DNA of 63,876 bases, filler included, from Hausera hauseri (Eukaryota), in the NCBI GenBank assembly GCA_046269625.1. It is 9 parts of 9 records of this genome, joined end to end, with 100 filler letters (N's around TTAATTAATTAA, not from the genome) between each part and the next. Parts side by side here need not be neighbours in the genome. Positions count along the whole stretch, not along the records: positions 47,835 to 52,196 come from JBJURY010617109.1; 8 more parts are not named here. One strand, written 5' to 3'. Below the pieces are notes generated by a model. It had not been told where the DNA came from and made no database searches. It saw only the letters and a program-made list of their open reading frames with translations. Both the position numbers and the translations under genes were made by a program. Below, piece by piece: positions 47,835-52,196 of this stretch. Numbering within the stretch: the first letter of the stretch is position 1; each line of letters opens with the position of its first letter.

Positions 47835-48183
47835 TATTTGTTCAGTCGTTTATTGTTATTGTGTTAATACACTTTATTCAGGTATTAATTTGTTTTTCTT
47901 TGGTTTATTAATCTGAGTGATAACCTATTGATTTGGTGAAAATTGAAGAGAAATTTTTGGAACGAATAGCTAATAGACTTGATTACTGAAAATTTTGTAT
48001 AAAAGAACGTTTAGAAATTTATTTCTCAAGACACAGAAAACAGCATCAAGCTGGTATTAAACTACTTGAGCAAAAAGCTAACTCAAAAGTTCAACCCTCA
48101 GATAATATTATATAAGGCTAATTTAATAGCACAAATATAATATTAAAACTTGTTTCAGTAAAATTCTATTTAGATAAAACCGT

Positions 48184-50385
48184 ATGTACGATCCAGAACT
48201 AGGGAAATTAAATTCTTTTCTGAAAACAAACCGTATAAGCCCGCAATCCTATGTTGCTTTAACCAATAATGAGAAGCGTATTGTTAAAATTGACGATATT
48301 AATCAGAATTTGCAAAGATTAATATATCAAATAGTCGTTGGCATTATTATAAAGTCTGTTAAACTTATCACTAACCTTAAGTGGGACTATTTGGAGTATA
48401 AAGAAGCAGTGTATGCCAATAAGGATGATATGTTTAGACGCGTGGACAAAGCCAAAGAAACAGAACTAATTGATGAAATTCTAATCGCCATTCAAAAGAT
48501 TGGGTTGATGATTCAAAATGGTATGAAAGTGATCGCTAAGAATATAAGGAAAAGAAACCAAAAGGTGCTAGATGACAGTTCAAGAAAAGTAGGAACTGAA
48601 GGACGACAAGGTCTAGATAACGTCATGAATCATGATGGTCGATGCGGAGAGAAGATAAAAAAGGAAGAAACGGAAAGAGGAAAGATAAATTTGGAAAGTG
48701 AAAAAGTGGAGTTCGAGGAGTCACAATTGAAACAAATTATTATAAAAATAAATCAAAGTCTACCGGTGGTCATTGACATTAGCGGGATGGAAACTATTGC
48801 TGTATTAAAGAAAAAAATATCCGAAAAATGTCACATAAGGGTGGAAGATGTTGTGGTCATATACAATAATAGAAAGTGGAACGACGATGAAATAATACAA
48901 AAGATCCCACATGGAACAACAATAAATTTCAATAGTGGGTTGAAAGGAGGGAGCACTACCGAAAACGAAGACTTCGAAAATCGACTATTAGCAAAAGACG
49001 AACTAAGATATGAATTAACAATACAGAGAAAATCATTAATGAATGGAAGATTAACGGAAGAGGAATTTCAATACCAAAACACCAAGTATGACGAAATCTT
49101 CAAGAAGTTATCCATGAAGATTAGCGCCTTAAAGCTACTCGCCAGGAAAGTAAAGAAGAAAGAAGAATTAGCGGAACTTATCGATGAGTCAAAAGGCGTC
49201 GAGGCACAAAATGAAGATGTAATAAAAATGATTCAGACGAAAGGTCTTATAATGTTAGAAGACAAATCCGACATGAAGGCTCGAAATGAATATCTGGCAC
49301 CGAAATTAAAGCGGGTTGAGCTTCCAAAATTTGGCGGGTATGTGGCAGAGTTCAAGAAATGGCGACAAATATACAAAACGTGCGTAGACAAAACATCACT
49401 TTCCAGTATAGATAAACAGATCCAATTAGAAAATTGTTTATATGGAGAAGCAAAACGTTTAGTACAAAGTTACGATCTCTCAGAAGAGTCCTATAAAGCA
49501 GCACTAGAAAAACTGGAACGATATTATGGAGGAAATCAGAGGAACTACGCTTCCCTTATGTCAGAAATTATGGAGTTTCAGAAAATAAGTATACACAATA
49601 TTAAGGAACTGGATTCGTTTGCCACGTTGTTGGATTCAGTCATCGTTAGGTTGAAACATTTAGATCGTGAAGTGGAATTAGAAGGTGGGTTACTATATCA
49701 AAATCTGATCCAGAAATTACCTGAGATTATGGTACTATCATGGGAGAGATATCGTGAAGACAAAAATAAGAAACGAAATGTACACGATTTGAAAGTATGG
49801 GTGGAAAAAGAAGCTGAATTAAAACGTATTGCTGCGGAAGGAGTCCACGGAATCAAGGTTTTGATGCCGAACAAATATAGATACTTTGAGCGATCAACGA
49901 GGAATTCGTTTTTCACTAATAAAAAAGAAGATATAAATAAGTTAACAAACAAGACTGAATTTGATGTTAAAGAAAAAGGCAATGGAAGAAATGATAGTTG
50001 TCTGAAAAATAAAGAAAATTACCAAAAGCCATGCAAATACTTTCTATCAGGTAATTGTCAATTCGGTAAGTGGTGTAAATTTCAACATGAAAAAGAAGAT
50101 CTAAAAGGAGGATCTAATAGTTATAAAAAGTTATCTCAAATGCCTTGTATATATTTTCAAAACGGAAATTGTAGATATGGAAAAAGTTGTCGATTCAAAC
50201 ACGGAGACATCGATTACTCAAGGAATCTCAAGAAAAAATTGGATAAAGACGAGGTGTCTAAAACCCCTACCGGAGCTGAGAAAACAAAACCACGATCGAA
50301 CGATAATTCCAGTCAGACACATGATAAAGATCATTCAGAAAAGCGATCTTATATGACAAAGATGGAAAAAAGTCCAAAACATTAG
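48184..50385 (+). CDS. gag: BEL/Pao Gag with a ubiquitin-like domain (48730-48951), DUF1759-type capsid region and two CCCH zinc fingers (50032-50088, 50146-50202)
   Basis: KQIIIK...ETIAVLKKKISEK...VIYNNRKWND...SGLKGG; LKRVELPKFGG...KQIQLENCLYGEAKRLV...YKAALEKLERYYG; C-x7-C-x5-C-x3-H twice. Confidence 0.88.
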   Translation: MYDPELGKLNSFLKTNRISPQSYVALTNNEKRIVKIDDINQNLQRLIYQIVVGIIIKSVKLITNLKWDYLEYKEAVYANKDDMFRRVDKAKETELIDEILIAIQKIGLMIQNGMKVIAKNIRKRNQKVLDDSSRKVGTEGRQGLDNVMNHDGRCGEKIKKEETERGKINLESEKVEFEESQLKQIIIKINQSLPVVIDISGMETIAVLKKKISEKCHIRVEDVVVIYNNRKWNDDEIIQKIPHGTTINFNSGLKGGSTTENEDFENRLLAKDELRYELTIQRKSLMNGRLTEEEFQYQNTKYDEIFKKLSMKISALKLLARKVKKKEELAELIDESKGVEAQNEDVIKMIQTKGLIMLEDKSDMKARNEYLAPKLKRVELPKFGGYVAEFKKWRQIYKTCVDKTSLSSIDKQIQLENCLYGEAKRLVQSYDLSEESYKAALEKLERYYGGNQRNYASLMSEIMEFQKISIHNIKELDSFATLLDSVIVRLKHLDREVELEGGLLYQNLIQKLPEIMVLSWERYREDKNKKRNVHDLKVWVEKEAELKRIAAEGVHGIKVLMPNKYRYFERSTRNSFFTNKKEDINKLTNKTEFDVKEKGNGRNDSCLKNKENYQKPCKYFLSGNCQFGKWCKFQHEKEDLKGGSNSYKKLSQMPCIYFQNGNCRYGKSCRFKHGDIDYSRNLKKKLDKDEVSKTPTGAEKTKPRSNDNSSQTHDKDHSEKRSYMTKMEKSPKH

Positions 50386-52196
50386 ACAGAATAGCATTAA
50401 GGACTGTGTCAGTTTACTTAATTAATGGGAGTAAAAAAATCAAAGTGAATATGTTATTGGATGATGCCAGTACTAACAGCTTTCTTGAAGAGGGTATCGT
50501 ACAACAATTAAGACTTAGTGGAGAAGAAGAAGACGTTACTGTGTCGGTAGTTAGAGACATACAACAAAAACAGAAGATGACTAGAGACCATATAATCTTA
50601 CAAAGTTTAGACAACAGTGTTTGTGAACAATTTAATGTATTGTCTATGAGGGAACCAACCGGAAAAATGAATGTTGTCAACTGGACGATAGAAAAGAGGC
50701 GATGGCCACATTTACGGAATATTAAATTTATAGAAACAGAGAAGGAAGAACATGTAGATGGAATCATACATGCTAACTACATACATCTTTAAAAATCCAT
50801 GATGGAAATTTCGGGAAAACCAGGAGAACCAATAGCTCGATTGACCCATCTTGGTTTGACGTGCGTTGGGACCTTAAATAATAAGAAAAATGAGATAATA
50901 TGTAATAACTTAGTACGGACGTTTTGAACAAGAGTCGATGAAATGAATGATGACATGAAGAAATGGTGGGAAATCGAAAATTCAATCGAAGAAAGAGAAA
51001 TGTGGTCGAAATTAGATAAAGAGATTTTTCAAAGTACTAAAGAGAAAATGAAGAAGACTGAAGATGGAAGATATGAAGTCAATCTACCTTGGAAGAATAG
51101 GACAGAAGAAATACTAGGATCTAAACAAATAGCAGAGAAACGTCTTGTATATTTGGAAAGAAAACTAAACTTGAATGATCCAGCAAAAATGGCTTATGAA
51201 CAAGTAATTAACGACCACATCAAAAAAGGGTACGTAGAACCAGTAAGAGAGAAAGAAAACGAGACAAATTACTGGATGCTACCACACTTTCCCATCCTAA
51301 AACCGGACAGATCCACTACTAAAGTGAGAGTAGTTTTTGATGCTGCTGCAAAGGTAAAAGGAAAGAGTCTGAATGACTTATTACATCCAGGACCGAAACT
51401 ACAACTAGACCTAATAGAGATCTTAATACGTATGCGACGTTATAGAATTGTATTGATCTGCGATATAGCAGAAATGTTTTTACAAATTGGAATATCTCCA
51501 GAGGATAGAAAATTTACGCGATTCTTGTGGAGAACAAACGGGAAAATCAATACATATCAATTCACGAGGCTAGTGTTCGGACTAAATGCCTCACCTTTCC
51601 TGGCACAACTTGTAAGTCAGGTAAATGCGGACACATTCGAATGCCTATATCCACGAGCAGTCGAAACGATAAAACAGTCTACATATATGGATGACTGCAT
51701 AGATTCTGTGGAATCAGAAGAAGAAGCTATTGAGTTGTACCAACAACTAAAAGAAATTTGGGCTGCAGCGGGAATGAAAACGCATAAATGGCTGTCAAAC
51801 TCAAAACAATTGAGTCGGAGGATCCCAGAAGATGAGAGAGCAAAAGAGTACACCTTCAAGAGTGAAGTCAACTGTATTTCGAAAACTTTAGGGTTAAAAT
51901 GGAACGTCAAAGAAGATCGATTGACCTTCGATGGAGGGGGAAACTATGAAAATAGACTGACGAAAAGAAGTATTTTAAGTGCCTTAGCAAAAATTTTTGA
52001 CCCTTTGGGATTATTGAGTACCATCACTGTAACAGGCAAATGTTTGTTACAAGAAATGTGGTTAAAGGGATTGATTGGGATCAAGATATTCCCGAAGAGT
52101 TACAACATCGTACCAAGATATGGTTAGACCAGTTAACTGAGATTAACGAAATAAAAATAGAAAGATGGTTAGGAATGAGCAAAGCTAATGACAAAG
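50380..52196 (+). pseudogene. pol: BEL/Pao pol (protease, RT, start of the RNase H region), frameshifted and cut by contig end
   Basis: LLDDASTNSF, GRYEVNLPWK, LPHFPILKPDRSTTKVRVVFDAA, CDIAEMFLQI, FGLNASPF, YMDD, TKRSILSALAKIFDPLG. Confidence 0.93.

Follow-up and report, generated by a model that had tools for sequence, protein, structure and literature searches.

The window analysed here comprises 63,876 nucleotides of Hausera hauseri DNA (assembly GCA_046269625.1), nine parts joined end to end, and its positions 47835-52196 (record JBJURY010617109.1) hold the 5′ part of a BEL/Pao-type long terminal repeat (LTR) retrotransposon on the + strand. Within the Gag open reading frame (ORF) of this element, positions 48730-48951, which correspond exactly to residues 183-256, encode a diverged homologue of ubiquitin whose likeness to ubiquitin is weak yet beyond chance. 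This ubiquitin-like domain (UBL) ends in Leu-Lys-Gly-Gly followed by Ser, and the Gags of one clade of related elements carry ubiquitin, or the tail of it, at the same place and with the same kind of junction. The explanation towards which we lean is that the captured ubiquitin acts as a cis cleavage module of the BEL/Pao Gag, cut by host deubiquitinases after Leu-x-Gly-Gly.

A diverged ubiquitin in the Gag frame

An isolated 87-residue piece of Gag matched the Pfam ubiquitin profile PF00240 with an E-value of 2.9e-4 (21.0 bits), and the whole Gag matched it with an E-value of 0.003 (17.7 bits), in both cases without reaching the curated cut-off of 25.4 bits. The matches returned by phmmer from PDB sequences were nearly all to ubiquitin, NEDD8, ISG15 and FUBI-eS30. 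The phmmer alignment to ubiquitin reproduced the single two-residue gap that the first-pass annotation had reported, with 17 of 74 positions identical (~23%, counted by eye on this alignment). All 14 positions that form the ubiquitin core are hydrophobic in the window copy, against a background frequency of 28%. Comparison of the same piece with the ubiquitin moiety of one related Gag, P0003, gave a BLASTP E-value of 7e-7.

Structure prediction points to a beta-grasp fold. An AlphaFold2 model built from an eight-row alignment that included true ubiquitins had an overall predicted local distance difference test score (pLDDT) of 64.6, and of 70-80 for its core, with its elements in beta-beta-alpha-beta-beta order; a model from the single sequence was poor (pLDDT 42.8) and was not used. 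Foldseek searches of the PDB with the former model retrieved ubiquitin-type folds only, with template modelling (TM) scores of 0.85-0.88 (target-normalized) and root-mean-square deviations of 1.1-2.0 Å over 70-76 residues, which is the outcome that had been expected of such a check when the domain was first noticed. Against predicted viral structures, the model matched viral ubiquitins and ubiquitin-bearing fragments of the polyprotein of bovine viral diarrhea virus (BVDV), and no Gag structure of this library was among the 50 matches listed.

An exhaustive HMMER search with the whole Gag as query against 1.84 billion cluster representatives returned 3443 matches, most of which cover DUF1759 only. 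Seven of the best 150 (P0002, P0003, P0021, P0028, P0052, P0124 and P0129) have alignments that extend to the UBL or through it. Those that have enough of the domain score 29-97 bits with PF00240, above the 25.4-bit cut-off: P0003 (E-value 4.4e-28), P0021 (1.3e-25), P0052 (3.5e-22), P0028 (3.8e-11, N-truncated) and P0124 (6.9e-7), each of which also carries DUF1759. The remaining two, P0129 and P0002, are truncated and retain the tail only (LRLKGG-M and FKLKGG-S, respectively); P0002 starts at a Met five residues before the di-glycine, the UBL upstream being missing or disrupted. A hidden Markov model built from the ubiquitin moieties of the clade detected no further carriers among the 151 proteins of the set.

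With the exception of P0124, the carriers are singletons from ENA/JGI metagenome assemblies, their contigs measuring 1.2-4.4 kb. P0124 is UniParc entry UPI000604C4AE, for which Pfam matches to both PF00240 and PF03564 have been precomputed. The first-pass annotation had presented the architecture as unfamiliar from any described BEL lineage. This holds for the literature, since full-text searches found no paper describing ubiquitin in a BEL/Pao Gag; as a sequence, the architecture already exists in public protein collections, as the UniParc entry attests.

A multiple alignment of these Gags places the di-glycine in one column, followed in all members by S, G or M, an acidic stretch and a basic helical linker. 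A chance resemblance to ubiquitin could be argued from the Pfam score of the window copy, which lies under the curated cut-off; the bona fide ubiquitin found in register in related Gags refutes this for practical purposes, and we attach a negligible probability to it. Pfam, phmmer and the in-register ubiquitin of the relatives all agree with the initial proposal of a ubiquitin-like domain that has retained its di-glycine. The domain was also correctly placed directly upstream of the coiled coil and capsid region, with DUF1759 at residues 383-527.

In the clade members other than the window copy, ubiquitin is the most conserved region of Gag. Between P0003 and P0021, identity reaches 67% in the ubiquitin moiety, compared with 35% for DUF1759 and 15% for the linker. 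More than the fold has therefore been retained by these elements, which implies recognition by the host ubiquitin machinery.

A single old capture

A maximum-likelihood tree was inferred from DUF1759 columns only (131 rows; IQ-TREE, LG+C20 in quick mode, with SH-aLRT as the only support measure). These columns exclude ubiquitin itself, so the trait plays no part in the tree. All eight ubiquitin-bearing Gags, that of the window included, fall in one clade with an SH-aLRT support of 99. The clade also includes three N-truncated rows of unreadable state (P0001, P0004 and P0005) and no ubiquitin-free row. To count as informative and ubiquitin-free, a Gag had to lack ubiquitin and to extend 170 residues or more upstream of DUF1759; all 47 such Gags lie outside the clade. 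A typical BEL Gag therefore has no ubiquitin, as had been stated at the outset: none of the 47 informative Gags outside the clade carries one.

The clade has long internal branches, of 0.6-1.35 changes per site, and for this reason we take the capture to be old. This one deep clade, some members of which still have near-canonical ubiquitin, bears out the earlier suggestion that the domain was retained over a long time and not captured recently.

Several independent captures at one spot could also have produced this distribution. Ubiquitin capture is recurrent in BVDV (PMC13517609), and P0003 and P0021 are both near canonical, their mutual identity being about that expected from two separate descents. 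The carriers, however, are a single clade on the capsid tree, and the junction and the linker after the di-glycine align in all members; for the linker of the window copy, identity to the post-di-glycine regions outside its own family is 19-28%. States that are derived relative to ubiquitin are shared as well (judged by eye): Ile67 is present in 6 of 7, Gly64 in four, and I17, A24, D53 and K60 occur both in the window copy and in P0003. These shared residues would be consistent with vertical descent of the ubiquitin domain. We regard repeated capture as very unlikely, and the ubiquitin of these Gags as having a single old origin.

Known cases of ubiquitin in viral genomes share some of these features. 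In pestiviruses (BVDV Osloss and others), a host ubiquitin monomer likewise lies in frame and immediately precedes the N-terminus of a mature protein, cytopathic BVDV having ubiquitin inserts at the NS3 N-terminus (PMC2850149, PMC13517609), and host enzymes create that mature N-terminus, as is predicted by analogy for the BEL/Pao Gag. The pestivirus inserts are recent, sporadic and recurring, sit in the replicase and are tied to an attenuated, dead-end biotype. In contrast, the domain described here is old, fixed and clade-defining, with a single deep clade and long branches where a pestivirus-type history would give recent, scattered and repeated insertions, and it belongs to the Gag of a reverse-transcribing element. 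Baculovirus v-ubi and the ubiquitins of giant viruses are also captured host ubiquitins kept by a virus, and were among the top structural matches in the viral library. Unlike the Gag domain, such free-standing viral ubiquitins are mostly separate genes or parts of other fusions and do not lie within a capsid polyprotein. The stable gain of a new protein domain is regarded as rare in LTR retrotransposons (PMC9289625), and a lineage that has kept host ubiquitin in Gag over deep divergence would be a long-lived counterpart of the short-lived pestivirus inserts.

The Leu-x-Gly-Gly junction and host deubiquitinases

The junction at 48940-48954, a putative deubiquitinase cleavage site, reads ttg aaa gga ggg / agc, which encodes L253-K254-G255-G256 / S257. 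G255 and G256 align with G75 and G76 of ubiquitin, at the end of the fold. In the AlphaFold2 model, residues 254-258 (82-86 of the piece) have a pLDDT below 50, and the tail between the beta-grasp and the next helix is modelled as flexible. Across the clade, in ubiquitin numbering, Leu73 and Gly76 are present in 8 of 8 sequences and Gly75 in 7 of 8, positions 72 and 74 vary, and the residue that follows is never Pro. Leu-x-Gly-Gly and then a residue other than Pro is the constant and most conserved feature of the UBL in this clade. Together with the flexibility modelled for the tail, this lends indirect support to the use of a host protease that the first-pass annotation had suggested.

In eukaryotic cells, linear ubiquitin fusions are cleaved behind Gly76 except where the next residue is Pro, and a change of the di-glycine blocks cutting; deubiquitinases process all natural linear ubiquitin fusions. 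The Gag in the window has the layout of a linear fusion, with a UBL, a di-glycine junction, a non-Pro residue and an unrelated polypeptide in one ORF. With its leader upstream, it resembles the laboratory design in which ubiquitin is placed between a reference protein and a test protein. Polyubiquitin, Ub-eL40, Ub-eS31, FUBI-eS30 and SDE2 also consist of a di-glycine-ending ubiquitin or UBL fused to an unrelated protein. In these precursors, which are encoded by host genes, the UBL stands first in the protein, whereas the Gag domain belongs to a mobile element and has a leader of up to 182 residues upstream. For linear fusions of ubiquitin and UBLs, the di-glycine is required for endoproteolytic cleavage (PMC8354635), and diverged UBLs are still processed by deubiquitinases. 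FUBI shares 36% identity with ubiquitin, and its release from eS30 depends on USP36 and on the di-glycine (PMC8354635, PMC10611586); USP5 removes the diverged UBL of SDE2, a reaction that relies on mimicry of ubiquitin (PMC13572447).

We propose that an ancestor of one BEL/Pao (Belpaoviridae-type) lineage took a ubiquitin monomer from a host ubiquitin mRNA, and that this monomer became fixed in frame in Gag, between a variable leader and the core made up of the coiled coil, DUF1759 and the zinc fingers. Host deubiquitinases would cut after Leu-x-Gly-Gly, giving a leader-UBL product and a Gag core that begins at Ser257, and the aspartic protease of the element would not be needed for this step. 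In the sublineage of the window copy, the fold and Leu-x-Gly-Gly would have been kept while the surfaces that serve E1 activation, the building of chains and contact with most ubiquitin receptors were lost; the UBL would then act solely as a signal for cutting, provided that it is still recognized. By analogy with the processed fusions, Gag is very probably split by host deubiquitinases in members with near-canonical ubiquitin; for the diverged form in the window, the same analogy leaves splitting finely balanced, on the doubtful side. The prevailing view is that Gag maturation in reverse-transcribing elements is the work of the element's own aspartic protease; the proposed mechanism, if true, would link the assembly of retroelements with host deubiquitinases.

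The first-pass annotation had also raised conjugation of the freed product, or its action as a decoy; for the window copy, this is disfavoured. Set by eye against canonical ubiquitin, the tail of this copy is S71-G72-L73-K74-G75-G76, with Gly in place of Arg at position 72. The lysine positions K11, K48 and K63 are occupied by L, R and H, and the Ile44 patch reads N8/I44/N68/N70, with three of four positions changed. Judged from these residues, the window copy would lack the Arg72 and the acceptor lysines expected of a conjugation-competent domain. Conjugation, plausible only for members that keep LRLRGG, is unlikely for this product with its G72.

The UBL might instead remain uncut, as a permanent module of Gag that docks on the proteasome, on the endosomal sorting complexes required for transport (ESCRT) or on other ubiquitin receptors, or that aids the folding or solubility of Gag. 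Many cellular proteins contain integral UBL domains, the window copy retains the fold, and the ubiquitin surface is well preserved in P0003, P0021 and P0052. A docking role fits poorly with the altered Ile44 patch of the window copy, a receptor surface that has changed while Leu-x-Gly-Gly remains. Conserved Leu-x-Gly-Gly with a non-Pro residue after it is in addition a mark of processed ubiquitin-type proteins and not of integral UBLs, and eukaryotic cells cleave linear ubiquitin fusions that have an intact di-glycine (PMC8354635). A module that is never cut is, in our judgement, unlikely.

Several observations weigh against cleavage by host deubiquitinases, above all in the window copy. P0124 has E at position 75. 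The window UBL is without L8, H68, V70 and R72, which are contacts of many deubiquitinases, and because of these missing residues and the ~23% identity to ubiquitin, recognition by host enzymes may have been lost. The pol region is degraded, with in-frame stops at 50790-50792 and 50925-50927 and a frameshift between ~52040 and 52127. The window UBL is also the most diverged of the clade, its identity to the other ubiquitin moieties (22-27%) being lower than that of DUF1759 (26-37%), which would fit relaxed constraint as well. A close sister copy with a UBL was not found in word-indexed protein searches, metagenome scans or viral-contig scans, the word-indexed protein searches returning only P0001, a fragment that starts after the UBL, and P0124.

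Part of this evidence would suit a decaying relic, that is, a UBL that was functional in an ancestor and now drifts in a dead copy, with the di-glycine as a leftover. A Pfam score of 21 bits, as opposed to 29-97 in the relatives, the low identity relative to DUF1759, and the two stops and two frame changes in pol are all as such a history would predict. Decay is hard to reconcile with 733 AT-rich Gag codons that contain no stop or frameshift, with core positions that have all stayed hydrophobic while the surface changed, as under selection for the fold, or with P0002, which is 42% identical to the window Gag and keeps F-K-L-K-G-G-S at the matching site. A core and tail that are kept and a surface that is replaced form the pattern that would be expected from selection for the fold and the cleavage site, not from neutral decay, and we hold a mere relic to be quite improbable. 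For a cis cleavage module, the series from the near-canonical P0003 to the 23%-identical window copy would show which features of ubiquitin such a role needs.

The product upstream of the cut would contain the N-terminal leader (residues 1-182, 48184-48729), an open frame with no recognized relative: no match was found in Pfam, in PDB sequences or in the 151 related Gags. A frame open over these 182 codons has a probability of ~9e-8 (none of 20000 shuffles was open), and the other two frames contain 20-21 stops. Neither the leader of P0003 nor that of P0021 is related to the leader of the window copy, and the two show no relation to one another. Since the leaders are unrelated between members, the constant module consists of ubiquitin, di-glycine, linker and capsid, and the part upstream is variable. 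In P0021, residues 76-141 are a diverged HSP90 fragment (PF00183, E-value 1.1e-11, profile positions 283-348) that ends nine residues before ubiquitin, which suggests that the leader slot has taken up host sequence. P0003 has a Met at ubiquitin position 1, and its ubiquitin may therefore be N-terminal.

A more tentative extension, which we consider possible and on balance somewhat doubtful, is that this old monophyletic lineage uses ubiquitin as a natural, host-operated "2A-like" separator. An exchangeable N-terminal accessory protein would be made in equimolar amounts with Gag and cut off by host deubiquitinases. If so, the accessory protein would differ by sublineage, with an HSP90-derived fragment in one, and the maturation of Gag would depend on the host ubiquitin system, beyond a retroviral-type protease alone.

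Layout of the element and the gag/pro boundary

The piece of the window that carries the element starts 349 bases 5′ of the Gag ORF and ends at 52196 within pol, and no long repeats were found within 47835-52196. All features described lie on the + strand. The Gag ORF (48184-50385, 733 codons) runs without a stop or frameshift through AT-rich sequence. A DUF1759 Gag followed by a protease, reverse transcriptase and a Peptidase_A17 region (Pfam matches and an LLDDAS motif) assigns the element to BEL/Pao. It shares DUF1759, the LLDD[GA]S protease downstream, reverse transcriptase and Peptidase_A17 with ordinary BEL/Pao elements, and its Gag falls within the BEL/Pao Gag tree. It departs from them by the addition of ubiquitin and a leader upstream of the coiled coil, and by the tandem CCCH zinc fingers of its sublineage.

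Downstream of the UBL, residues 257-372 (48952-49299) form a helical linker, acidic and then basic, and a coiled coil, as judged from the modelled helix, which begins at about residue 262 in the AlphaFold2 model, and from the clade alignment. The UBL precedes both this linker and the capsid-like DUF1759 region, which spans residues 373-560 (49300-49863; PF03564 at residues 383-527, E-value 5.6e-18). Two CCCH zinc fingers at residues 616-636 and 654-674 (50029-50205) occupy the nucleocapsid position and match zf-CCCH_4, zf-CCCH and zf-CCCH_2 with E-values of 1e-10 to 2.5e-7.

The CCCH pair, with C-x8-C-x5-C-x3-H spacing, is present in the window copy and in P0002; in the clade relatives P0028 and P0052, and also in P0011, which is free of ubiquitin, C-x2-C-x3-H-x4-C knuckles take its place. 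The difference looks like a second domain swap in the same lineage. A second L-K-G-G-S occurs at 50101-50115 (residues 641-645), in the 19-residue spacer between the two fingers, and is missing from P0002. Duplication of the first at the DNA level was rejected, as the codons differ (cta aaa gga gga tct versus ttg aaa gga ggg agc); by a rough estimate, a given 5-mer would recur by chance about once in 700 proteins of this size. Past its Gag and protease, P0002 contains a long coiled coil at residues 920-993 that matches CFAP58 (E-value 1.7e-18), and probably represents an insertion into a host gene, or an assembly or gene-model chimera with one.

At the gag/pro boundary (50365-50385), a run of six A residues at 50365-50370 lies just before the Gag stop, and the frame changes by -1, as read from the DNA and its frames. 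In P0002 and P0028, Gag and protease are in one frame at the corresponding site. A canonical -1 slippery heptamer was sought by eye at the boundary and none was found in frame. The first-pass annotation had called the Gag ORF intact. This holds for the 733 codons, in which there is no lesion; it does not hold for the end of the ORF, which follows the A run at a point where the relatives read on, nor for pol, which is broken. The contrast between a lesion-free Gag of 2.2 kb and four lesions in ~1.8 kb of pol was considered as a sign of selection and dropped, its probability by chance being ~0.1 by a rough estimate. Separate expression of the Gag of the window copy would still be possible.

The protease region (50340-50792) lies in frame -1 relative to Gag, ends at the in-frame stop at 50790-50792, and is marked by weak matches to DUF1758 and Asp_protease_2 and by the LLDDAS motif. 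Across the active-site region of the window copy (50340-50480) and 38 related proteins, LLDD[GA]S is present in 36 of the 39 protease motif matches of the set, and LLDSGS occurs only in three repeats of one protein. The idea that LLDDAS marks an unusual protease that calls for a host enzyme was therefore abandoned, LLDD[GA]S being normal in the BEL/Pao group in place of D-S/T-G. Reverse transcriptase and the start of Peptidase_A17 (Pao) follow at 50943-52127 (RVT_1, E-value 1.8e-12; Peptidase_A17, 6.2e-9).

Base composition changes along the piece. Over 47835-48584, which covers the 5′ flank and the beginning of the leader, G+C is 27-31% and the purine skew is weak; from the UBL onward, G+C is 33-39% with a strong purine excess, so that the leader differs in composition from the remaining coding region.

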